DNA of 43,240 nucleotides from Paraphysomonas bandaiensis (taxonomy: Eukaryota > Protista > Chrysophyceae): NCBI GenBank assembly GCA_965644295.1, contig CBFFRP010000252.1:1-43240 (forward strand), in the 5' to 3' direction. Of this stretch, positions 1-12,390 are shown piece by piece (positions within the stretch are counted from its first letter, which is position 1; each line of letters opens with the position of its first letter). Under the pieces are notes generated by a model, which did no database searches, had not been told where the DNA came from, and was given only the letters and a program-made list of their open reading frames with translations. Position numbers and translations under genes: made by a program.

Positions 1-214
1 ATTGATAATCATGTCTTTCTTTGTCTTTTGAATGATTATATAAATATCAATGATAAGCATGAATTGTCATAGTCATAATATATCATATATCTCAGTGTGA
101 GTTATGGTAATAATAATAATATTCAATCTATGTTTGCACAGATGGTATGTACAAACTTAAGCATATACAATAGAGAGCTTGTAGAATAGAATAACCTGAT
201 AGCTGGTTATTACA
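1..214 (-). repeat. 3' LTR (partial; continues left of the window)
   Basis: Matches 9402-9615 with no mismatch seen by eye; ends ...ggttattaca on plus (TGTAATAACC on minus), abutting the PPT. Confidence 0.95.
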
Positions 215-226
215 CTACCCCCTCCA
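215..226 (-). other. Polypurine tract (plus-strand primer)
   Basis: Minus strand reads TGGAGGGGGTAG immediately before the TG of the 3' LTR. Confidence 0.85.
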
Positions 227-269: not shown

Positions 270-3200
270 CTAAAATGGCTTCATATTAGTAGCATTTATT
301 CGAACCTCTTTTCCTTCAATTTCAGCATCATAAAGTATTGGACTTAGTCGCCGAATAACTTTATAAGGTCCTTCAAATCTAGCTTGTAATTTGGCATTGA
401 TTTTATACAATTCCTCATCATCAGCCGATTTAAACACATTAATTGGACGTCGAATTCTGAAGAATAAATCACCAGCATTATATTCTTTGAACTCTCGAGG
501 TCGCCTAGATACCATATTATGTCGAAGATGATTCTTTTGAGCTTTCTTCGTTGCATAATTCCAAGCTTGTTCCAAAGAAATCAACAAATTATCTATCCAT
601 TCAGCTTCAATAGTTCCAGGTTGTAATCGAAGCTCGGAAAGTTTCGAGGACAATGTAAACTCTATAGATGGTAAACGGCATTCTCTACCGAACATCATAT
701 AATATGGAGTAAAACTTGTGCTCGAGGACACTGTAGTATTATACATCAATTGTACTGTAGGCAAAAATGTATCCCAGTCATCCTGTAATACACCTACAAA
801 ATGGTACAACTGATCCTTCAACGTCTTGTTGTGATTCTCAACTAAACCCTGGCTCCTTGGAGTATAAGGAGTAGTGTTAATCCTTCTATACTTGAATAAC
901 TTGGATATTGCTTTGGTCAGTTTATTGACAAACTCTGTGCCTTTATCACTCACCAGTAATTCTGGTAACCCAAATGGACAAAACACATGAGTAATCAAAG
1001 CATTAGCCACTTCCAAAGGCGTCTTGTTCTTAAGAGGCATAAGCCAAACAAATTTAGTAAGGAAATCCTTTACCACTAGAATATAACTGAAACCACTTTT
1101 GGTTTTCACCAATCTTCCTGTTAAATCAATATGTATTCGTGACAAAGGAAATTTTGCATCAGGGTATTTCATTATTGGAATCTTTGGTCGCGTTTGATAG
1201 GTCTTACGTAATTTACAAGGTATACATTCCTCCACATGTTTCTGTACATCCTTGCGTATTGACGGCCAAAAATATCTCAATTTCAAAGTTTCAAGCATTC
1301 GTTGTGTTCCTGGATGCGTATATCCTTCATGGAAATACTTCATTAGTTGAAAACGTAACACCTGAGGGACCATAATTTGCCAATCTATTGATCCCTTGTT
1401 TTTCTGAACATGTTTTCTCAATAGTGTCTTGTGCGATGGTTCATCTGCATTCTCATGTAACTTGTAAACATGACCATCCACTTCTAACTCATGGCCAGTT
1501 TCAAAATTTGATAACTGTGATATAATCAATCCAAGTTGAGTATCATTTTCTTGGATCTGAAACATACTCTCTCTACTCGAAGGCCACTTAATCTCCGGAT
1601 CTTCTTCCGGATGATCTAATAAATATTGATCTGATAACTCCCATAATCCAGATTCTCCACATACGGCGAATGGGTGAGTATCATATCTATCCAATTTCCC
1701 TGACAAAGGCCTCCTATGACCAACCACTAACTTATGCGTTTCATCATAATGTATTGAAGCAATCTCATATTTTTGGAAATTATCGTCATCAATATACTTT
1801 CTGCCTACCAGATATTGCAATTCGTCAGCAAGTGATTGGCATTGTACTAGGTTCTCATAAGAGTACTTCTCCAAAGCGTCGGTTTCTAGATATCGGAGAG
1901 TTCTCTCGAAATTCCTAGTATTTCGTTCCTCCATCTCAACAAGTTCCTGGATTCTGGAATTTTCTTCATCGCTGTACTTAAAGATTTTGGAATATAGTTT
2001 CTCCTGAACTTTCCGTTTTTGATCGTACACAATTAACTCAAATTCATCTTTAAAAGACACGGTAGTCTTCCGTCGAGATCCATCTAAATTCAGAATTTGA
2101 TTATCTTCTGGACTAAGTTGATCACTTCTAGTACTCCAAAATTCTTTACCATAGTCAAAAAATATTTCATCCCCAGGCAAGATCTCTCTAAGAGCCATCA
2201 AAACTCCTTTAGATTTTTTCCATATCAATTTCGCATTAATCAATTGTTTGGATATCCCATCATTCGCATATCGACCTAAGCTTGAACCAGGTTCCCATCC
2301 ATCAATAACAATCTTACGATGTGCTCCAGCAATCATCTGCATCCCATAATTGGAGCTTAATTGATCCACTCCTTCAGATACAACCGGACCCACATAATCA
2401 CAAATCTCAACATTTGGACAGATCTGTTTGGTGGCAAAAAGTCCCCATCCTGCTTTTAGCTTTGTCGATGGAAGAATAGTACATTGATTGTAACCAGAAA
2501 TTCGTCGTTCTCGAATTAACTTCATATCTTCTGACTCATCTGGATTATCCATATAGTTTGTTCGAGATGGATGAAAGCTAGTTCGGTTCGAGTGTGCAGT
2601 TGCATGTTGTATATTCTGTCCCGAATTGCTGAATTTCATCCTTGACTCACCAGTTTCCTGAACTTCCGTAATATTCAATTCTTTAAGTAGATTCTCAACC
2701 TGGCAACTATATTGTTCTACATCGATGCTCGGCTGCTTCCTTCTTTTTAATGTAGAGCCAGCCACTTTAAATCTAACTTCAGAATTTTCTAATTCTGAAC
2801 TTTCCCCTAATACTCCCCCTTTCTTGACATTAGTCAAAGAAGACAACAAATCCAAATCCAGCGCATCACAATTACAGATTTGAACCTCAAATTTGCTAGA
2901 GCAAGTATGAGTTTTCTTAATAGTTTGCGCCTCCACAACCGCTTGGCGTTTCAATTTACTCAACTGTCGTTTTGCAGCCCCCCATGATCGGATGAGGTCT
3001 GGATCCTCATTATCAACCACCGGCCCGAGATGATCGGAGAGCTCCTCCCTAGTAGCTGGCGGTACATCCCCTATTTGCCAAAGGCGACTTAACATATCAG
3101 CAACTACATTTTCCACCCCTTTTTTGTAATGTAAAGCAAAACGATATGATTGAAGATCCATGAGGTATCCCAGCAATCGTGGATTAAGTGTTGCAGTCAC

Positions 3201-4850
3201 TGAATGGACCATATATTTCAGGCAATTGTGGTCAGAGTGGACTTCAAATTTACGACCACTACTCAGATAAATATGCCAATGGAGAATAACATCCCTGAGG
3301 GCCTTACATTCCAAATCCGTGGCCGAGTAATTTCGTTCAGCAGGAGTTAACTTACGACTGAAATATTCCACCGGATGGAGCTGCCCTGCGTCATCATGCT
3401 GCATGAGAACCCCACCGATACCACGCTTTGTCTTGGAAGCATCCAGGTGAATGACAAACGGTTTAGAATTATCAATGTAACGAAGCACAGGAGCCTTCCG
3501 CAGCGCCTCTTTAAGCCTCTCCATGGCATGGCCGTGTATCTCAGGGCGCCAGAGTTTCTTCACGTTGACATTTTTCTTCGTCAAGTCATACAGAGGCAAC
3601 GCAACGTCTGCGTATTGAGGAATATACTGACGGTAGAATGAAGTACTTCCTAAAAAACATCGAACAGCCGTAACGTCCTCTGGGTCTGCAAGATTTGTAA
3701 TCGCCTCAACCTTTTTCGGATCAGGGCATCGGCCGTTTCTGGACAGAATATGTCCAAGGAACCGCAGCTCCCGATAATTAATATGAGTCTTTTCAATTTT
3801 AAATGTAAGATGACGATTTCGAAGTCTATCGTATATGGACTGCTGTGTCAGGAAATGTGCACGAAAACCCCCAGTATGGTTAAGCACATCGTCCAGGTAT
3901 GCAGAGACTTGAAACCGATCCATGTCTTCAAAAGTCTGGGCAATGACTCTACTAAAGTGTGAAGGTGCATTGACCCAGCCTTGTAACATCACCGTATACT
4001 GTAAATGAGCGTTATGAGTGCGGAATGCCGTTTTAAATCGACTATCAGCGTCAAGCTCCACACAGAAAAATGCATCAGCAATATCGCCCGCTGAAAACCG
4101 GTCAGTTCCCACAGGAATGCTATCTAGCAAGTCATCAATCCTGGGAAGTGGAAAAATATCTACCTTAGTTTTCTGATTGAGCGATCGGACATCTGAACAC
4201 ATCCGAAAAAATGTGGCCACTTCAGGCCAATTAACCTTTTTGAAGATTTCTAAATGTGCCGTGTCTCCCCATTTATCTAAAAATTTCTGAATACGGTCAT
4301 GATAAGGAACCAGAACTAAACCATGGCTCCAATCACTGTTTGAGGGTTGAAGCTTTTTCTGACGAAGCATCATACCAGTTTTAGCCTCTAAAAATGCTTG
4401 TTGCAATAAAGAATATTTCCGAGGTCGCGCCCGAACCGGAACTTCATCAGTAGTTTCAATACTCACTTTATAATCCTTAATCCGTGGAGGGTTATCGGGA
4501 TCAGGAAAACAGAAAACATCAATATTGGCCAAAGCTTGAGCCAAAAAATAATCACGTTCATTATGATGTGAAGCTATAGTATCCGCGTCGATAGAAATCT
4601 CCCCTTGCAACGAGACTGCTTCATCATCCTTATATATATCCAGCTTAGTTAAAATCAGTTCAATACTCTCTTGAAGACGGTCAGGAGTGTACTTGTCAAA
4701 TCGTGGTTGAACTGAATTTCGCTGACACAAATCCACTAAATTCCATAATTCCACAGGGAATGACTCCGGTCGTGGACAATCCGAAGTCGTATCGGCTATG
4801 TTAACAGGCGGTGGCTCCGGAGGTGGCCGATTCACCTCTTTGCCGTCTAC
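270..4850 (-). CDS. pol: Pol polyprotein: reverse transcriptase, RNase H, SET domain, integrase (probably made as a fusion with ORF1)
   Basis: RT: RMCSDVRSLN, FPLPRIDDLL, KTAFRT, MLQGWVNAP, YLDD (3888-3899), FLGH. RNase H: LDAS, ERNYSATDLE, SDH, NVVADMLSR. SET at 2136-2483. IN: H-x4-H...C-x2-C, IHIDL, VSDKGTEF, GLVE, GPY. Frame is open from 4850; the listed start at 4835 is a GTG. Confidence 0.96.
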   Translation of the reverse strand, partial: VDGKEVNRPPPEPPPVNIADTTSDCPRPESFPVELWNLVDLCQRNSVQPRFDKYTPDRLQESIELILTKLDIYKDDEAVSLQGEISIDADTIASHHNERDYFLAQALANIDVFCFPDPDNPPRIKDYKVSIETTDEVPVRARPRKYSLLQQAFLEAKTGMMLRQKKLQPSNSDWSHGLVLVPYHDRIQKFLDKWGDTAHLEIFKKVNWPEVATFFRMCSDVRSLNQKTKVDIFPLPRIDDLLDSIPVGTDRFSAGDIADAFFCVELDADSRFKTAFRTHNAHLQYTVMLQGWVNAPSHFSRVIAQTFEDMDRFQVSAYLDDVLNHTGGFRAHFLTQQSIYDRLRNRHLTFKIEKTHINYRELRFLGHILSRNGRCPDPKKVEAITNLADPEDVTAVRCFLGSTSFYRQYIPQYADVALPLYDLTKKNVNVKKLWRPEIHGHAMERLKEALRKAPVLRYIDNSKPFVIHLDASKTKRGIGGVLMQHDDAGQLHPVEYFSRKLTPAERNYSATDLECKALRDVILHWHIYLSSGRKFEVHSDHNCLKYMVHSVTATLNPRLLGYLMDLQSYRFALHYKKGVENVVADMLSRLWQIGDVPPATREELSDHLGPVVDNEDPDLIRSWGAAKRQLSKLKRQAVVEAQTIKKTHTCSSKFEVQICNCDALDLDLLSSLTNVKKGGVLGESSELENSEVRFKVAGSTLKRRKQPSIDVEQYSCQVENLLKELNITEVQETGESRMKFSNSGQNIQHATAHSNRTSFHPSRTNYMDNPDESEDMKLIRERRISGYNQCTILPSTKLKAGWGLFATKQICPNVEICDYVGPVVSEGVDQLSSNYGMQMIAGAHRKIVIDGWEPGSSLGRYANDGISKQLINAKLIWKKSKGVLMALREILPGDEIFFDYGKEFWSTRSDQLSPEDNQILNLDGSRRKTTVSFKDEFELIVYDQKRKVQEKLYSKIFKYSDEENSRIQELVEMEERNTRNFERTLRYLETDALEKYSYENLVQCQSLADELQYLVGRKYIDDDNFQKYEIASIHYDETHKLVVGHRRPLSGKLDRYDTHPFAVCGESGLWELSDQYLLDHPEEDPEIKWPSSRESMFQIQENDTQLGLIISQLSNFETGHELEVDGHVYKLHENADEPSHKTLLRKHVQKNKGSIDWQIMVPQVLRFQLMKYFHEGYTHPGTQRMLETLKLRYFWPSIRKDVQKHVEECIPCKLRKTYQTRPKIPIMKYPDAKFPLSRIHIDLTGRLVKTKSGFSYILVVKDFLTKFVWLMPLKNKTPLEVANALITHVFCPFGLPELLVSDKGTEFVNKLTKAISKLFKYRRINTTPYTPRSQGLVENHNKTLKDQLYHFVGVLQDDWDTFLPTVQLMYNTTVSSSTSFTPYYMMFGRECRLPSIEFTLSSKLSELRLQPGTIEAEWIDNLLISLEQAWNYATKKAQKNHLRHNMVSRRPREFKEYNAGDLFFRIRRPINVFKSADDEELYKINAKLQARFEGPYKVIRRLSPILYDAEIEGKEVRINATNMKPF
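2136..2483 (-). other. SET domain (protein lysine methyltransferase) within Pol
   Basis: AGWGLFA (GxG), DYVG, LGRYAND (RFxNH-like), NAKL, EILPGDEIFFDYGKEFW (ExxxDY with catalytic Tyr); 116 aa. Confidence 0.92.
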
Positions 4851-7800
4851 TCATTTCGATGAGGACACCAGCCTAGTGACATTTTCGTGATTCTCTTCAG
4901 ATAACATAGAAATATCTGAATGCTGGAATTTGTCGTCAGTAGGCATGATAGTGGTATCCTCCGTCTCAACACTGCCATTCATAGCAGATTCCACCGTCTC
5001 CTGATTATGAACCTGCATCCCCAATAATATGGGTTGAAGTCGTACAACTAAACGCGGTCTACCCGGTAGATGGATCCAATCATCGGTATGATTAGAAGCC
5101 CATATATAAGGTCTGTTCGCCGTACAAATAGCATCTTCAAATTGTAAGACGGGCTCATTAGCATCATCACCTGAATTAATCCTTGCAACCTCTGGCAGAG
5201 TCTGTATCCATCCACCTAACGGAGCACCCTTGCCCACTTGAACAGGAATCCGCATCTTAGAATGCGGTGGGATATGTTTCGATATGCAGACTGCAGCCTT
5301 GTGAGGTTGAGGTTTGTTTTCACGGAGATGGCGTGCAACACATTTCTGTACCACAGGGTCCTGAGCTGATGCCATTTGCGTAACAGTCTCATTCCAGTTG
5401 AATTGAGGCATTGCATACTGAATACCATTAGTTTGGAACAACAGCAGTTTATGATCAAACAAGTCAATCATTTTGATACGTCGTAATGCATGCCCTCCAA
5501 AGATTACATTCATGGAACAATTCGGTATAATTGGTATCCATGCTTTCAACTGAACTTGTTCCCTTGCATTGTTCAAAAGTGGTGCCTCTCCCGGCAACAC
5601 TGCCACAGGTAAGACCCGTTGTGCAGTAACAGTGTAGGTAAGACAAGCTCTCCAACTCACAGCGATATCCTGTGAACCTATTCCCCGAATAATGTACCGG
5701 TCTCTCTTTGGGATTCGTACTCGCTTAAGATTCAAGAGGGCTGCACACTCTTCGTCGATCAAGGACTCCATAGAGCCATGATCCACCTGGTGCCAACCGA
5801 CTCTCTGTACTGGTTTACCAGTTTCATCAACTGTATCATATAGAACACGAAACATGGATAATGTATCTTGAGATTCATCCCTAGGTGTCACAGTGTGCAC
5901 CAAGTATCGAACTTTTTGTGCAGCATGAACCTTTCGTTTGGGTTTTGATTTTGACTTAGTAGATCGTGAACCGGAAAGTGAGTCTGTACTGTGAGCAGGT
6001 ATAGAGTCATCCAGTGTAGAGAAAGAAGAGTCATCATCACTATCCGCCCAATGTACTTGTGGTGTACTAGAAACACTTGATGCTATGGAATTAGATTTCT
6101 TCCGTTCGCCACCAATGAATGTCGTATGCAAAGCACTCCCTCCATCCCACCGGCTAGTCAAATCCCGAAATGCTGCCTGAAATTCCTCCTTCTGAGCCGT
6201 AGGCAACTGAGACCAAGGTTGGCTATACTTATTCAATCTGGACAACCAAAAATTGTATATTCGATTCCTTTCAATGTTACGTGGTGTCTCAGACACAAAT
6301 CCAAGTGGGTCAAATTTCCCATTCGTGATGCGTCGGCATTGAGCGTTGTTTATACTATGTCGAAGGCCACATCGTGAACATGTAAGCTTCGCAATCTCAA
6401 TCGGTGTGAGAGATGGTTTGGGTTCCTCGCGTATGCCGGCATGAACTTTGTGATGTCGTCGTAAGCCACCCTCACCCTTAGATGTGTCTGGTTGTTTACT
6501 AGATTGGACATCAGGACGTATAATGTATAGTAGCGTTCCCTGCTGGAATTCTTCTTGAATCTCTCGCCAGATTGATTCTACCTCCTCCCATGATAGACTC
6601 CAATTTTCAGTCGACTTCGCCCTTTCAATTTTTGTGATCTTATTGTCGTACGCTGCAACCAACGATTTACCCCAAACAGGCTCTTTTCCTACCACTCGGC
6701 GCATAGATTCTTCCATCACCTGTGCCGTCTGGCGATCCGGCGTATTATGTTCAACTACCTCTTTCAGTTCATAATATAGTTGCATAACTGCTGTAGGCGT
6801 AGCGAGGTCAGGAGCAGCCCAGTCCTCAATCTGTTTGGCACGCTGTTCATTGGTCTGTACGGGACAATAATTACGGATAGCCCAATGGCAGAAATGCACC
6901 CAACGACGCATCCAAAATTCATATTCAGTGGCTAATTGGCTATCCTCCTGGTCATCCCATATCTCTGGCACACGATTCAAAGACAACCGTTGCAGTTCCT
7001 CTTTAAAGCCGCCCTTAAAACACCAACCATTCTTCGTCTGTATGACCAGATCTTTCAGCCCCATCTTGGCCTGACGTGCCTTCTGGACAGCAAAACGGAG
7101 TCCTCGTTCAATGGGGTATCGATTAGATTGATCTTTCTCTAGACGCATCTTGTCATCAGTCTTCATGTAGAGAGTAGGCTCCTTGACTTCTCTTCTCCAT
7201 GGAGTAGCTTTGGGCAATGCTTTAGACATTAACCGCATGGCTCTCGACGATCGCATTTGGTTACAGAGCAGTGACCAGTGTTGCTCTCCAATTTGTTGAA
7301 GGTGACACCCGAATGCTTGTGCGTCTAGCAGTCTGCCATCTTCAGTTGGATAAATACGGGAATTCGATCTTGAACCCCTAGAACTCAACACTCGGGATGT
7401 ACTTGATCTGGTATCTGCTGACCGACTTCCTCTGCTGACAAAGGAACCCCGACTACCATTGCTGACGAAGGAGTGGTATGACTCATCGTCAGAGTCAACG
7501 GTCCTCTCTTCCCAAGATCCAAATTTTTTATTTTGCTGACTGAGTTGTTTGCTGAGGAGATTGCAGCGCATCATTAGTTGGCTATCGGCCTCCTCCCACA
7601 TAGTTTCAGCCATGTCTCTTATATCAAGGTATTGGTTCAGCACCATGCACAATTCCGCTGTTTCGTAAATGTGCTCTTCAGCCACTAACTCATGTACATT
7701 GTCAAGAACTGTCAGCCTACTTAACCACTCGCGAACATTTGATGGTAATTGCAAGCCGTTTCCTCGATTTAAGACTAGTTGGGCAAGCTGAGAAATATCT

Positions 7801-8921
7801 TCCGCAGAACTCTCTCTTGCTATTTTCATTTGCTCAAAAAAGTGGTCCTGTAAACGATCAGTGACCTCAGTAGCTGTACAAGCCATGTAAATCTGCTGCT
7901 CCCAATGCTGCAGTGGCTCTGCTATATGAGCGGTGTATCGCTGTTTTGACCATCTGGTGGTATGCACCCTCCGTCGATCTGCGTACTGTTGCAGGATGTC
8001 AAGAGAAATCTTTAGGTCCATAGGATCTCTAGCCCCACGATCCAGGTACAAATGCTCCATATATGTGTCCTCGTTTAGGTCTGGCCGAGGACGCAATCTT
8101 CTATGGCCCAATATTATGCACTTCTCTAATGTGTCTGTGGTGGGTCTCTTTGATCTGAGTATCCCCCTTCTTACTCGGCATCGATAACATAGACCACCCT
8201 GAATTTCCATTGAATTTACCTGGTCCTTACAATCGATACATTGATTTTCCGAGCAATAATAACATATTCCTCCTGCGGTGAGACGCTTGGGATCTGTGAG
8301 TCGCTGACAGATTTGACACCTATCCGCATCTCTACCTAGTTGGTCTGGTCTGCTGGTGTTATATACACCTTGCAATCCAGAGGTGGAATGTAGCACATTG
8401 TGTGCCTCATCCCCTGCGTGAGGTAAGGATGTATAACGACACTCCTTTGCCTCAGCCTCCTTGTTACTTTGTTCCTTGAATGGCAAGGGGTCCATATGCA
8501 ATGGACTATCTCCTGTCGCATCTGCATCAAACGAACAAAAATCATCCTGAGCCCTCAATGGTTGAATAGCGTCCTTACCGAATGCGAGAGGTTTTCGGGC
8601 TGACAAGGGTACCTCCTCCGGACTACTAAGACGATCCACCAGTTCTGGAACAGTCGTTGCTTGACTGTCTGCTTCATGAGTTTCTGTCTCTCTAAAGTCG
8701 TCACTTTGTTTATTGAGAGATGAAATTTCCTTAAAAAATTGAGACACCAACGTCTCTGATTCGACCTCGGACAACCCAAATGCCAAGCCTATATCCCGGA
8801 TTTGATCCTCACTGGCATTGGCAATGGAAGGGTCTAACCCTCCAAGCATAAGCCTGAGGGTCCTTCTCACTGACTCGAATTTAGTAGACTCTTGTGCGCT
8901 ATCAAGAGTCTCCTCCTCCAT
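4851..8921 (-). CDS. gag: Gag-protease polyprotein (twin C4 Zn fingers, CCHC-like knuckle, atypical aspartic protease)
   Basis: 1356-aa ORF upstream of pol; CSRCGLRHSINNAQC knuckle at 6336-6380; protease-like QVDHGSMESLID, IRGIG flap and VIFGGHAL. Confidence 0.85.
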   Translation of the reverse strand: MEEETLDSAQESTKFESVRRTLRLMLGGLDPSIANASEDQIRDIGLAFGLSEVESETLVSQFFKEISSLNKQSDDFRETETHEADSQATTVPELVDRLSSPEEVPLSARKPLAFGKDAIQPLRAQDDFCSFDADATGDSPLHMDPLPFKEQSNKEAEAKECRYTSLPHAGDEAHNVLHSTSGLQGVYNTSRPDQLGRDADRCQICQRLTDPKRLTAGGICYYCSENQCIDCKDQVNSMEIQGGLCYRCRVRRGILRSKRPTTDTLEKCIILGHRRLRPRPDLNEDTYMEHLYLDRGARDPMDLKISLDILQQYADRRRVHTTRWSKQRYTAHIAEPLQHWEQQIYMACTATEVTDRLQDHFFEQMKIARESSAEDISQLAQLVLNRGNGLQLPSNVREWLSRLTVLDNVHELVAEEHIYETAELCMVLNQYLDIRDMAETMWEEADSQLMMRCNLLSKQLSQQNKKFGSWEERTVDSDDESYHSFVSNGSRGSFVSRGSRSADTRSSTSRVLSSRGSRSNSRIYPTEDGRLLDAQAFGCHLQQIGEQHWSLLCNQMRSSRAMRLMSKALPKATPWRREVKEPTLYMKTDDKMRLEKDQSNRYPIERGLRFAVQKARQAKMGLKDLVIQTKNGWCFKGGFKEELQRLSLNRVPEIWDDQEDSQLATEYEFWMRRWVHFCHWAIRNYCPVQTNEQRAKQIEDWAAPDLATPTAVMQLYYELKEVVEHNTPDRQTAQVMEESMRRVVGKEPVWGKSLVAAYDNKITKIERAKSTENWSLSWEEVESIWREIQEEFQQGTLLYIIRPDVQSSKQPDTSKGEGGLRRHHKVHAGIREEPKPSLTPIEIAKLTCSRCGLRHSINNAQCRRITNGKFDPLGFVSETPRNIERNRIYNFWLSRLNKYSQPWSQLPTAQKEEFQAAFRDLTSRWDGGSALHTTFIGGERKKSNSIASSVSSTPQVHWADSDDDSSFSTLDDSIPAHSTDSLSGSRSTKSKSKPKRKVHAAQKVRYLVHTVTPRDESQDTLSMFRVLYDTVDETGKPVQRVGWHQVDHGSMESLIDEECAALLNLKRVRIPKRDRYIIRGIGSQDIAVSWRACLTYTVTAQRVLPVAVLPGEAPLLNNAREQVQLKAWIPIIPNCSMNVIFGGHALRRIKMIDLFDHKLLLFQTNGIQYAMPQFNWNETVTQMASAQDPVVQKCVARHLRENKPQPHKAAVCISKHIPPHSKMRIPVQVGKGAPLGGWIQTLPEVARINSGDDANEPVLQFEDAICTANRPYIWASNHTDDWIHLPGRPRLVVRLQPILLGMQVHNQETVESAMNGSVETEDTTIMPTDDKFQHSDISMLSEENHENVTRLVSSSK

Positions 8922-9238
8922 AATAATAACAATATAATCAAATCACAATGAACGAATATATGTCTACAACTACAATGCTATCTACCAGCAATTTCAAGAG
9001 TAAGGAAATTGCATCTTATTATCAATAATATAAATATGTCTACCTACGATTCCGTGATCAATGGAATGAACATCATTCATATTCAATACCAAACACATCA
9101 GTCTAACACAGTTGATCATAATAACTCATTACAACTGTATAAGGGAAGATACATTCAGTATTCTCATTGTAGTTGAAGCCTGGTATTCGTACTCTTTAGT
9201 ACAATCAATCCCCAATAAGCACTGAAGGAAATACGTAA

Positions 9239-9615
9239 TGTATAACTGTATTACTGGATAATCTGGCAATACACATCTATCAGCGTGGATATCAAACCCG
9301 GAATTCTCCAGTAAACTTCTCCAGCCTTAAAGTCAATATATATATATAATAAGAACATATATATATATCATCCATCATCAGTATCATCATTATGTCTCAT
9401 TATTGATAATCATGTCTTTCTTTGTCTTTTGAATGATTATATAAATATCAATGATAAGCATGAATTGTCATAGTCATAATATATCATATATCTCAGTGTG
9501 AGTTATGGTAATAATAATAATATTCAATCTATGTTTGCACAGATGGTATGTACAAACTTAAGCATATACAATAGAGAGCTTGTAGAATAGAATAACCTGA
9601 TAGCTGGTTATTACA
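9239..9615 (-). repeat. 5' LTR (right boundary firm, left boundary tentative)
   Basis: 9402-9615 matches 1-214; right end TTACA at 9615. Left end guessed from TGTATAAC at 9239, a near inverted repeat of the right end; alternatives are 9136 and 9247. Confidence 0.8.
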
Positions 9616-9638
9616 AGTAATATATGTACATACATATG

Positions 9639-9850
9639 TTATCTACGACAACACCTTCATACAAACATGTACACAGATCTTATCTACGACAACACCTTCA
9701 TACATACATGCACATACATCTTATCTTCGACATCACCTTCATACATACACATACATCTTATCTTCGACATCACCTTCATACATGCATACACATCTTATCT
9801 ACGACATCACCTTCATACATGCATACACATCTTATCTACGACATCACCTT
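9639..9850. repeat. Minisatellite, 6 copies of a 37-41 bp unit
   Basis: Core TTATCT(A/T)CGACA(A/T)CACCTT at about 9639, 9680, 9721, 9758, 9795 and 9832, separated by CATACA-type sequence. Confidence 0.9.
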
Positions 9851-10589
9851 AATCTTGACTAATGATATATGTATACTTCAGTCATATTTACAGGACACAA
9901 CAGATCATTACGAATGATACAGCATTAGGAGTCATATGGTCGACAGGCTCTTCACTGGTTGGGTCGTAAGAGGTGCCCCTCTACCACATACATACACTCT
10001 CACCACCCCCACAACTCATCAACACTCTCATATTACTCATATGTTATCCTTATAGAGGAAGTCCTCATATGGACGATCACCACCAGCTCCATTAACAACA
10101 TCGTCACAGTCTTCTAACGGATACACATGCTTCCACAGCACCATTAATGCAGATAGACCATATAAAATAACATACTCAGGAGCGCATTAGTGGTGAACGC
10201 TTCTGGTTCAGTTGTATGACTATTCAGGGTGCTCCATGCGGTCTATGCATGTATATGTGTGTGGGTGTTCTGTATGTATATGTGTGTATCTGCTGCGGTA
10301 TTATTCATATGATCATACGAGTCTCTCTCCTCATGAGGAGCACACACCACTATACACCACTATGACCACACACTGTTCATAGTCCTCACTCGTGTCTGTG
10401 AGTAGAGGCAGCAGCAGAGCCTCTGAATCATGTACTCGTATATGCATATATCCACATCACATTCACTTCGAAGTCACCCAGAGGTATACTCCCATATACG
10501 CACACGTATACCTATGTATTCCATATACACAGTATACAGAGAATACGTAGCTTCACAGATGCAGCAAAAAGCTTCACATATGCACTCAT

Positions 10590-10591
<2 letters not shown>

Positions 10592-10621
<30 letters not shown>

Positions 10622-10858
10622 TGTATGTATGTACTGTATGTATGTATGTATGTATGTATGTATGTATGTATGTATGTATGTATGTACTGTATGTATGTAT
10701 GTATGTATGTACAATGTATGTATGTATGTATGTATGTATGTATGTATGTATGTATGTATGTATGTATGTATGTATGTATGTATGTATGTATGTATGTACG
10801 TATGTATGTATGTATGTATGAATGTATATGTATGTATGTATGTATGTACGTATGTATA
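10592..10858. repeat. (TATG)n microsatellite
   Basis: Long, slightly imperfect TATG run. Confidence 0.98.
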
Positions 10859-10975
10859 GGTAGGTAGGTACATCAGGAGGTACATATGTGTGTGTATCGC
10901 TCATTCATGATCCTCACAGTTAACTAACAGGAACAACTTAACGACTCCCATCCCATCTCATCTCCTGCAACCACT

Positions 10976-12390
10976 ATGCATACATCACGTAGATACATAC
11001 CCCCTCTATCATCTCATCCAATATTCTTCCTATTCCTCATCCACTGCATATGCTCATACGGTTTCAATGTACTCATAGCACAGCCATATGGATCCATTAA
11101 GAAACTCCGTATCAGTGAAATCCAATTATTCAATCAGGTAACATGAGCTCCCTCATACCACTCATATACATCATATACACACAGGGATATCCTCTGCCGA
11201 TGTCAGCTATACATATACAGTATTATGATACTGACATGAACTCATCCACAGGCGATACACTCATACATCTCATTGATGAGGACCTCACTACATACTTCTC
11301 GATTAATCATGCTAGTAGTCAAGTTCCTACTGTTGAAATATCTTCAGGAAGTTTATTTTTTGATGAGATTGTCATTCATGCTGATCGCGATGCTGTGTAT
11401 GGTGCTGTGATCTCAGTTTCCCAAGATTATGATGTGTTCTGGAATACAACTGTGACTATGAAACACTCCGTGTATATATTTTCTTTCCACGAGCAGGCAA
11501 TTGCAAGTTTTCCAATTAAAATTGTTGATACTTTTTCGTATAATGGTGAACCGGCAGCACTATTCCACGTCCGATATTTATATTCTGCAGTTAATGAGTT
11601 TTTGATTGCAGAGAGCTGGTACACCAACAGCGGCAAGCGCAAACCCTTTCTGTTTTTTCAACAGTCCAAGACACAAAAAGAGTTTGCCCCGTATATGGAT
11701 AAAATTCGTTTTGTAGTGATTGATGAAGTTCCTTCTCGACCATCTGATTGGATCGACCCGCAAGAGCACTTCTGGATCCTGCCTGAGAGCTACGATTCGT
11801 TTTGGAGCGATCACTATCAACGCCAGTACATAAAGCAGTATGTCGATCCTGCTGTTAAGGCTTTATTTATATGTGTTGACGCGGATGAAGTAATAGATAC
11901 TGGAATAGTGGCAAAGTTTCGTAATTCCGATTTGTACGATGAATTTCGTCAGAAGGTTCGACTGGAACAAAGGTTATTTTACTACAATTTCAAGTGGTTA
12001 CATAGTCGTATATGGCTTCACCCCTTTGTACTTAATACGGAAGCTTTTCTGGCAGAGCCAAATATGATACAAGCTCGAGCCCATTACTTATATGACGACT
12101 CTTTAGATAGGGATTATATTATACTAAGAGCTGGGTGGCATTTGAGCTATTTCATGTCTGTTGATGATGTCGTGCGGAAAATAGAATCTGTAGCACACAG
12201 AGAAATGGATACAGAAGCTGCTAAATCCCGAGAAAATGTTATAGAATGTATGTTGGAAGGGAGGGATTTGTATAATCGAACGGCTCTGTTGTACAGCGCC
12301 TATGATTTTGACGGAGAATCTCACTTGCTACCTGATGGGTGGGAATGGTTTCAAGAATACGTGTTACGGTTACAAGGCTTGACTTATTGA
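10976..12390 (+). CDS. Glycosyltransferase family 17 (MGAT3/GnT-III-like); exons 10976-11137 and 11185-12390
   Basis: Motifs DTFSYNGE, ESWYTNSGKRKP, YQR, DADEVI, GWHLSYF, KIESVAH; upstream exon with a hydrophobic N-terminus joined in frame by a 47-nt GT..AG intron. Confidence 0.85.

Follow-up and report, generated by a model that had tools for sequence, protein, structure and literature searches.

A SET domain encoded in frame between RNase H and integrase in the Pol of a Ty3/Gypsy retrotransposon from Paraphysomonas bandaiensis

[quoted passage not shown] The Pfam domains encoded in its single Pol frame follow the order reverse transcriptase (RT), RNase H (RH), integrase (IN) H2C2 zinc-binding domain and integrase rve core, which is that of Ty3/Gypsy type elements. 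Located in the same frame, between the RNase H and the integrase zinc finger, is an uninterrupted SET domain (window 2136-2483, minus strand, corresponding to Pol amino acids 785-900), in the position given by an initial annotation made from the sequence alone, and a second conserved module, designated MOD2, is found 60-100 amino acids further downstream, between SET and the integrase. The account of the site in the initial annotation was incomplete, in that it overlooked both MOD2 and the replacement of the canonical SET NH motif by RYAND, and the element is carried on the minus strand.

The SET domain is detected by PF00856 at Pol amino acids 796-896 with an E-value of 3.6e-7; at 31 bits its score exceeds the cut-off of 22.4, and the alignment covers profile positions 1-105 of 105. 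The closest sequence match of the SET profile is G9a/EHMT2 (1e-13), and EZH2 (9e-11), EHMT1, Set2, SET8, KMT2, and PRDM9 are also matched. An AlphaFold model of Pol amino acids 765-1155, based on a 132-sequence alignment, has a mean predicted local distance difference test (pLDDT) value of 86.9, rising above 90 over the SET domain. When compared by VIA-align, the SET model matches SET8 with a Z-score of 14.4 and a root mean square deviation of 2.4 over 126 residues, SET7/9 with a Z-score of 14.1, and several PR domains (those of PRDM5, PRDM2, PRDM3, and PRDM9) with Z-scores of 13-14. The top Foldseek match is PRDM9 (E 3.6e-8), giant-virus SET proteins are matched at E-values of 1e-9 to 1e-6, and the matching ESM Atlas clusters consist mostly of PRDM proteins. 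A SET fold is present, the match being far beyond chance, and the assignment made in the initial annotation thus stands by both profile and predicted structure.

Inspection of the flanks reveals none of the Cys clusters that would constitute zinc-binding pre-SET or post-SET regions, as had also been noted initially, and the domain is closed by a C-flanking helix, as in SET8 and SET7/9. No C2H2 fingers accompany the SET domain, and the PRDM2_PR cut-off is not reached in the window element, being reached only in two copies of the second family described below; the PRDM PR domains are close by fold only. The GWGLFA, DYVG, RYAND, and GDEIFFDYGKEFW motifs listed in the initial annotation are all present. 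Residues invariant in 24-26 of 26 elements comprise G796-x-G798, Y814-x-G816, Tyr830 of the lysine channel, Arg855, Asn867, and Glu890, together with the catalytic Tyr895-Gly896 and (Tyr/Phe)899-Trp900. The GxG and Y895-G896 motifs align with those of G9a. Among 132 members of the subfamily, conservation of GxG, of the catalytic Tyr and of the aromatic residues of the lysine channel is 90% or higher.

MOD2 contains 13 invariant columns among the 19 elements aligned, and its model, in which the pLDDT exceeds 90, consists of two helices with three strands between them. It has no match to a Pfam family at E-values up to 10, no convincing match to a PDB sequence and none in a feature search of the ESM Atlas; the fold searches covered the model only as a whole and were filled by SET matches. 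From the helix and strand pattern, a chromo- or Tudor-like small barrel might be guessed.

The SET region is found in nine near-identical places on nine contigs of the genome, at 96-100% amino-acid identity. Both reading frames remain open in eight of these copies, seven of them full-length and one cut by a contig end, and the copy on contig C238 is older and broken. In the six complete copies the paired LTRs are 99.7-100% identical and are bordered by distinct 4-bp target-site duplications (TSDs), namely CAAA, AGTC, AATA, TTTT, CTAG, and ATAT, which rules out misassembly and indicates very recent transposition. The window element is thus a very young, recently transposed Ty3/Gypsy retrotransposon. 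The initial description of an intact element with identical LTRs holds with respect to the open frames and to the 214 nt that can be compared, but the 3′ LTR is cut; only 214 nt of it are present because the contig starts inside this repeat.

Beyond the sibling copies, a second family in the same genome (family 2; contigs C476, C654, C661, C339, and C463) has the same RT-RH-SET-MOD2-IN order and encodes SET domains that are 36-38% identical to that of the window element and score higher, at 44-51 bits. Nearly the entire Pol sequence of the window element was found in public sequencing runs, at least 15 in number and drawn from many studies, most of them marine or seawater metagenomes, as well as on two independent ENA metagenome contigs. 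Among JGI marine metagenome contigs, at least 16 loci match beyond the SET domain, with long open frames and no stops in the match, and in these the order RT, RH, SET, MOD2, integrase zinc finger and integrase core is fixed. When the SET profile was searched exhaustively with HMMER, 9114 proteins were matched at E ≤ 0.001, and seven metagenomic RT-RH-SET-IN polyproteins (protein clusters P0018, P0020, P0023, P0008, P0013, P0022, and P0153) are among the top matches. A word-index protein search with the single Pol matched only a metagenomic twin (P0001), and three metagenome fragments were matched when an 11-sequence profile was used in such a search. The SET domain is therefore retained in the sibling copies, in the second family and in the metagenomic relatives, an occurrence of RT-RH-SET-IN elements elsewhere that the initial annotation had proposed to look for.

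Some of these searches also brought up proteins of other kinds. The second-best match of the SET profile is P0003 (XP_061624999.1, 4152 amino acids) of the seadragon Phyllopteryx taeniolatus, in which five SET domains are arrayed in tandem and retroelement domains are absent. P0027 and P0028, encoded on metagenomic contigs of 140 kb, are giant cellular proteins that join SET domains of the subfamily to a PRMT5 arginine methyltransferase, and P0027 additionally contains DOT1-like domains, such that several types of histone methyltransferase are present in one chain. In a metagenomic subclade of the Gypsy elements, an Exo_endo_phos domain (APE-type endonuclease/phosphatase) is encoded in frame upstream of the RT, in addition to the integrase (L047:5260-6120, L049:3327-4196, L053:8769-9629, L054:2132-2992, and L056:2005-2865; proteins P0018 and P0023). 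To our knowledge, no LTR retrotransposon with an Exo_endo_phos domain has been described.

Both modules evolve under constraint. In the relatives, the ratio of nonsynonymous to synonymous substitution rates (omega) is 0.03-0.07 for SET, in agreement with the purifying selection that a dN/dS comparison had been expected to address, and 0.02-0.04 for MOD2, values like those of the RT and the integrase core. Between two family 2 loci (L022 and L024), 15 synonymous versus 4 nonsynonymous changes are found in SET (p 4e-7) and 11 versus 1 in MOD2, and between L054 and L056 the corresponding figures are 44.5 versus 14.5 for SET (p 7e-20) and 47 versus 16 for MOD2 (p 7e-19). Comparison of the window copy with the broken copy on C238 gave an omega of 0.13 for Pol, with too few changes in the 121 SET codons for a separate test. 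SET and MOD2 are thus under purifying selection as strong as that acting on RT and integrase.

In a tree of 158 SET domains, all 26 element-borne Gypsy SET domains form one clade, supported at 96% by the Shimodaira-Hasegawa-like approximate likelihood ratio test (SH-aLRT). Apart from these, the clade contains only short fragments from metagenomes; three are long enough to show MOD2, and all three do so. Trees of the integrase and of SET plus MOD2, each for 23 elements, have all major splits in common, and the deepest split has 98% SH-aLRT support in both. It follows from this agreement that the SET-MOD2 cassette was acquired once, long ago, and that it has been passed on vertically together with the integrase ever since.

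The same SET subfamily is not confined to LTR elements. A profile search of the 62.6-Mb genome gave 77 matches of the subfamily and, beyond the two Gypsy families, dozens of these lie in single open frames of 1000-3700 amino acids. All five of the long frames examined (contigs C143, C440, C426, C644, and C433; loci L027+L125, L126, L128, L130+L131, and L132) read SET, Exo_endo_phos (APE-type endonuclease) and RT, and so resemble long interspersed nuclear elements (LINEs). Their SET domains form a separate clade with 100% support that is related to the Gypsy SET clade. There is no support for a direct exchange of endonuclease domains between Gypsy and LINE-like elements, as a hidden Markov model (HMM) of the Gypsy endonuclease/exonuclease/phosphatase (EEP) domain had no match to the LINE EEP domains at E 1e-3. 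The LINE-like copy on C143 has direct repeats of 880 bp and 100% identity on either side, an unusual arrangement in a non-LTR element.

With respect to the host, several SIT-type silicon transporter genes are found in the genome, and no match to a light-harvesting-complex (LHC, chlorophyll a/b-binding) protein was detected in it; a marine habitat is suggested by the occurrence of the element in marine metagenomes. These hints point to a silicon-using, possibly non-photosynthetic or heterotrophic marine protist.

The features of the element are listed in Table 1. In the ORF list, the Pol open reading frame (ORF) is given as 1521 amino acids (270..4835, minus strand) and ORF1 as 1356 amino acids (4851..8921). 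ORF1 and Pol share one frame that is split by a single TGA, and Pol is presumably made by readthrough of this stop codon; the same one-frame layout with a single TGA is seen in the metagenomic relative L053. No Gag family match was obtained for ORF1 in the Pfam scan, and a probable retropepsin near its C-terminus (∼5661-5789) is indicated only by a sub-threshold match to Asp_protease (PF09668, E 0.021). The ATG and the first ∼60 codons of ORF1 fall within the 5′ LTR (window 8740-8921), as read directly from the boundary. The length of the complete LTR and its TG..CA termini were established from the sibling copies. By eye, no obvious tRNA-type TGG primer-binding site is seen in the sequence that follows the 5′ LTR (ATTTTTTAAGG...; 8715-8739, minus strand, ATTTTTTAAGGAAATTTCATC), no comparison with tRNAs having been made. 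No chromodomain family was matched in Pol at E-values up to 0.1 in Pfam. Just outside the 5′ LTR, a 37-nt unit is repeated five times in tandem and a (TGTA)n microsatellite of considerable length is present (window 9666-9887 and 10557-10907), and a glycosyltransferase-17-like ORF (11143-12390) begins ∼1.5 kb from the element.

Table 1. Features of the SET-encoding Ty3/Gypsy element in the window (positions in nucleotides).
Feature	Position	Strand	Basis and remarks
3′ LTR, first 214 nt	1..214	-	100% identical to 9402-9615 of the 5′ LTR
Polypurine tract GGAGGGGGTAG, abutting the 3′ LTR	215..225	-	Read directly; identical in all sibling copies
Pol open frame, RT-RH-linker-SET-MOD2-IN	270..4850	-	1526 codons open; TAG stop at 270-272
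Integrase C-terminal SH3-like region, weak match	327..407	-	PF24626, E 0.0023, below cut-off; stronger in family 2
Integrase catalytic core (rve), Pol aa 1230-1326	858..1148	-	PF00665, E 8.8e-9
Integrase_H2C2 zinc-binding domain, Pol aa 1156-1212	1200..1370	-	PF17921, E 1.5e-16
MOD2, conserved module of ∼100 aa, Pol aa 986-1089	1569..1880	-	Conserved in 19/19 aligned elements
SET and C-flanking helix, Pol aa 780-909	2109..2498	-	PF00856 above cut-off; Pfam core aa 796-896 = 2148-2450
RNase H-SET linker, Pol aa 565-779	2499..3143	-	No Pfam family; poorly conserved among relatives; omega 0.2-0.3, above that of the domains
RNase H (RT_RNaseH), Pol aa 434-564	3144..3536	-	PF17917 and PF17919, E ∼1e-27
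Reverse transcriptase, Pol aa 210-364	3744..4208	-	PF00078 (RVT_1), E 1.4e-18
Single in-frame TGA separating ORF1 and Pol	4851..4853	-	One frame shared in 8/8 copies with both frames open
ORF1, Gag-like, 1356 aa from ATG	4854..8921	-	Open in 8 copies; omega 0.11-0.18
5′ LTR, 876 bp, TGTAATAACC...GGTGTCTCA	8740..9615	-	Sibling copies and direct reading
Expected 4-bp TSD, 5′ copy TACT	9616..9619	-	Read directly; 3′ copy beyond contig start

The element is best explained as a recently active Ty3/Gypsy retrotransposon of an old clade, the Pol of which has gained, on one occasion, a two-part cassette of SET and MOD2 between RNase H and integrase. It is proposed that Pol would be produced by readthrough of the TGA after ORF1, that the cassette most likely remains with, or matures beside, the integrase, as is suggested by its position directly preceding the integrase zinc finger, and that it would enter the nucleus with the complementary DNA (cDNA)-integrase complex. 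At or near the insertion site, the SET domain would most likely act as an S-adenosylmethionine (SAM)-dependent lysine methyltransferase on nucleosomal histone tails, with MOD2 helping in docking. Through this methylation, the chromatin state of the newly inserted copy would be fixed, or the target would be marked and held. Of this scheme, to which as a whole we would assign an even chance of being correct, catalysis, substrate, retention with integrase and effect on chromatin are the parts that we infer. Comparison of the two types of element favors a role at target chromatin chiefly because the SET domain adjoins the target-engaging enzyme in both, the integrase in the Gypsy families and the endonuclease in the LINE-like elements. 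The wider proposition that a Gypsy clade of marine protists and, separately, LINE-like elements carry their own histone-lysine methyltransferase beside the enzyme that attacks DNA, and would write a mark at the new insertion, is offered more tentatively, at somewhat short of an even chance; since the subfamily recurs in LINE-like elements of this genome, a general strategy is likelier than an oddity.

Several points weigh against methylation of histone tails by the integrase-associated cassette. The canonical NH motif (R-F-I-N-H-S/C) is replaced, by R-Y-A-N-D in the window element and mostly by R-F-A-Q-D in its relatives, QD being present at this site in 16 of 25 of them, and mutation of the NH-motif His abolishes the activity of SUV39H1 and SET7/9. 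PRDM9, however, is active even though it is without this His, so that catalysis by the SET domain is plausible from its sequence, although not assured. The fold singles out no one substrate and points to neither a repressive nor an activating mark, as the best SET matches span enzymes for H4K20, H3K4, H3K9, H3K27, and H3K36. Retention of SET-MOD2 on the integrase, as opposed to its release by the protease, is an assumption. The RNA evidence is weak: in poly-A metatranscriptomes, contigs that are 150-317 nt long, of low depth and 99-100% identical cover window 727-1043 and 1424-1719 in the integrase and MOD2 part and none lies over SET, and contigs of this kind do not amount to proof of transcription.

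The altered NH site could also mean that SET is a pseudo-enzyme, which would have kept its fold and its lysine or peptide groove and which, together with MOD2, would tether the integrase to histone tails or chromatin proteins and so steer it in the manner of a chromodomain. Replacement of NH by ND or QD extends throughout the clade, many PR domains of PRDM proteins are among the closest fold and Atlas matches, and several PRDM PR domains are without detectable activity; furthermore, a location directly N-terminal to the integrase and a tight linkage to a second small module fit a targeting cassette. A module that only binds would not, however, need the GxG motif, the catalytic Tyr and the aromatic channel that are invariant in 24-26 of the 26 elements. 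The Asp that takes the place of the NH His is present in 98 of 104 subfamily members outside the elements, and this near-invariance points to a variant active site that still works, and not to a decayed one. A purely binding role is therefore considered unlikely, while retaining appreciable weight.

It is also conceivable that the SET domain is active on a non-histone substrate, either the element's own Gag or integrase or a host restriction or silencing factor, and would thereby aid maturation, nuclear entry or escape from defence. SET7/9 and SET8, the top structural matches, are known to methylate non-histone proteins, the pre-SET and post-SET zinc clusters are absent, and the readthrough layout suggests a polyprotein that would join Gag during assembly in the cytoplasm. 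By sequence, nevertheless, the domain is best matched by histone methyltransferases, and the same SET subfamily is fused to an endonuclease in LINE-like elements that have no Gag or integrase of this kind, so that a common role at chromatin or the target site is the simpler explanation; a non-histone target is rather improbable. That SET is a neutral passenger from a recent host-gene capture, or an assembly chimera without a role in the element, would accord with the occasional transduction of host sequence by retrotransposons and with the absence of SET from Gypsy descriptions in the literature searched, but misassembly, one-off capture and neutral carriage are excluded, to the point of being given almost no credence, by the nine copies on nine contigs, six with different TSDs, by the same order in a 36-38%-identical family and in independent metagenome assemblies, by omega values of 0.03-0.07 and by the co-phylogeny with integrase.

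As a rule, it is the host that writes the chromatin marks found on transposons, and the elements themselves read such marks through chromodomains or, rarely, carry DNA methyltransferases. A strongly selected SET domain next to the integrase suggests that mobile elements may bring to the insertion site either a histone-directed enzyme or a pseudo-enzyme that grips histones. If active, it would constitute a natural fusion of an integrase and a writer and would allow a direct test of whether the epigenetic fate of an element is of its own choosing, that is, self-silencing that spares the host or anti-silencing by which it stays active; it would also open up a so far unexplored level of the conflict between transposons and their hosts in marine protists. 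The initial annotation knew of no SET writer as a standard part of Gypsy Pol, subject to a check of the literature, and, in keeping with this, no description of SET inside a retrotransposon Pol was found in the full-text literature searched, Repbase, Dfam, and GyDB lying outside that search. A review of accessory domains includes the chromodomain, exonuclease, helicase, and DNA methylase, and SET is not among them.

Among known systems, the chromoviruses are similar in that a Gypsy Pol contains a chromatin-related accessory domain that is tied to the integrase and vertically inherited in a clade. Their chromodomain is, however, a reader located at the integrase C-terminus, whereas the window element has a domain of writer type with the SET fold, together with MOD2, N-terminal to the integrase. 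Retrotransposons of Symbiodinium and Klebsormidium carry cytosine DNA methyltransferases (de Mendoza et al., 2018; PMC5890265) and likewise represent protist or algal elements in which an acquired epigenetic enzyme of writer type is present in many copies, although this enzyme acts on DNA and does not have the SET fold, and neither SET nor lysine methylation is mentioned in that study. The nearest precedent is found in Phytophthora infestans, in which proto-Helentron and some Helentrons carry a separate SET ORF of ∼153 amino acids (Thomas et al., 2014; PMC4067079). Here too a minimal SET coding sequence is associated with a transposable element of a stramenopile, but the element is a rolling-circle DNA transposon that carries it only occasionally and as a separate ORF, rather than as an in-frame domain of Pol, and selection or co-phylogeny was not shown there.

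At the level of the domain itself, SET8/KMT5A, SET7/9, the PRDM PR domains and giant-virus SET proteins such as chlorovirus vSET share with the Gypsy SET the same fold, the absence of zinc-binding pre-SET and post-SET regions, the C-flanking helix and the (E/D)EI..YG..(Y/F)W motif that closes the domain. The Gypsy SET differs from these minimal SET domains in having ND or QD in place of NH, in its location in a retroelement polyprotein and in being without the zinc-finger array of the PRDM proteins. In SETMAR (Metnase), similarly, a single polypeptide unites a SET domain with a DNA-integrating enzyme of transposon origin; SETMAR, however, arose by domestication in the host, through the joining of a mariner transposase to an existing SET gene, whereas the SET domain described here resides in an autonomous and currently mobile retrotransposon.

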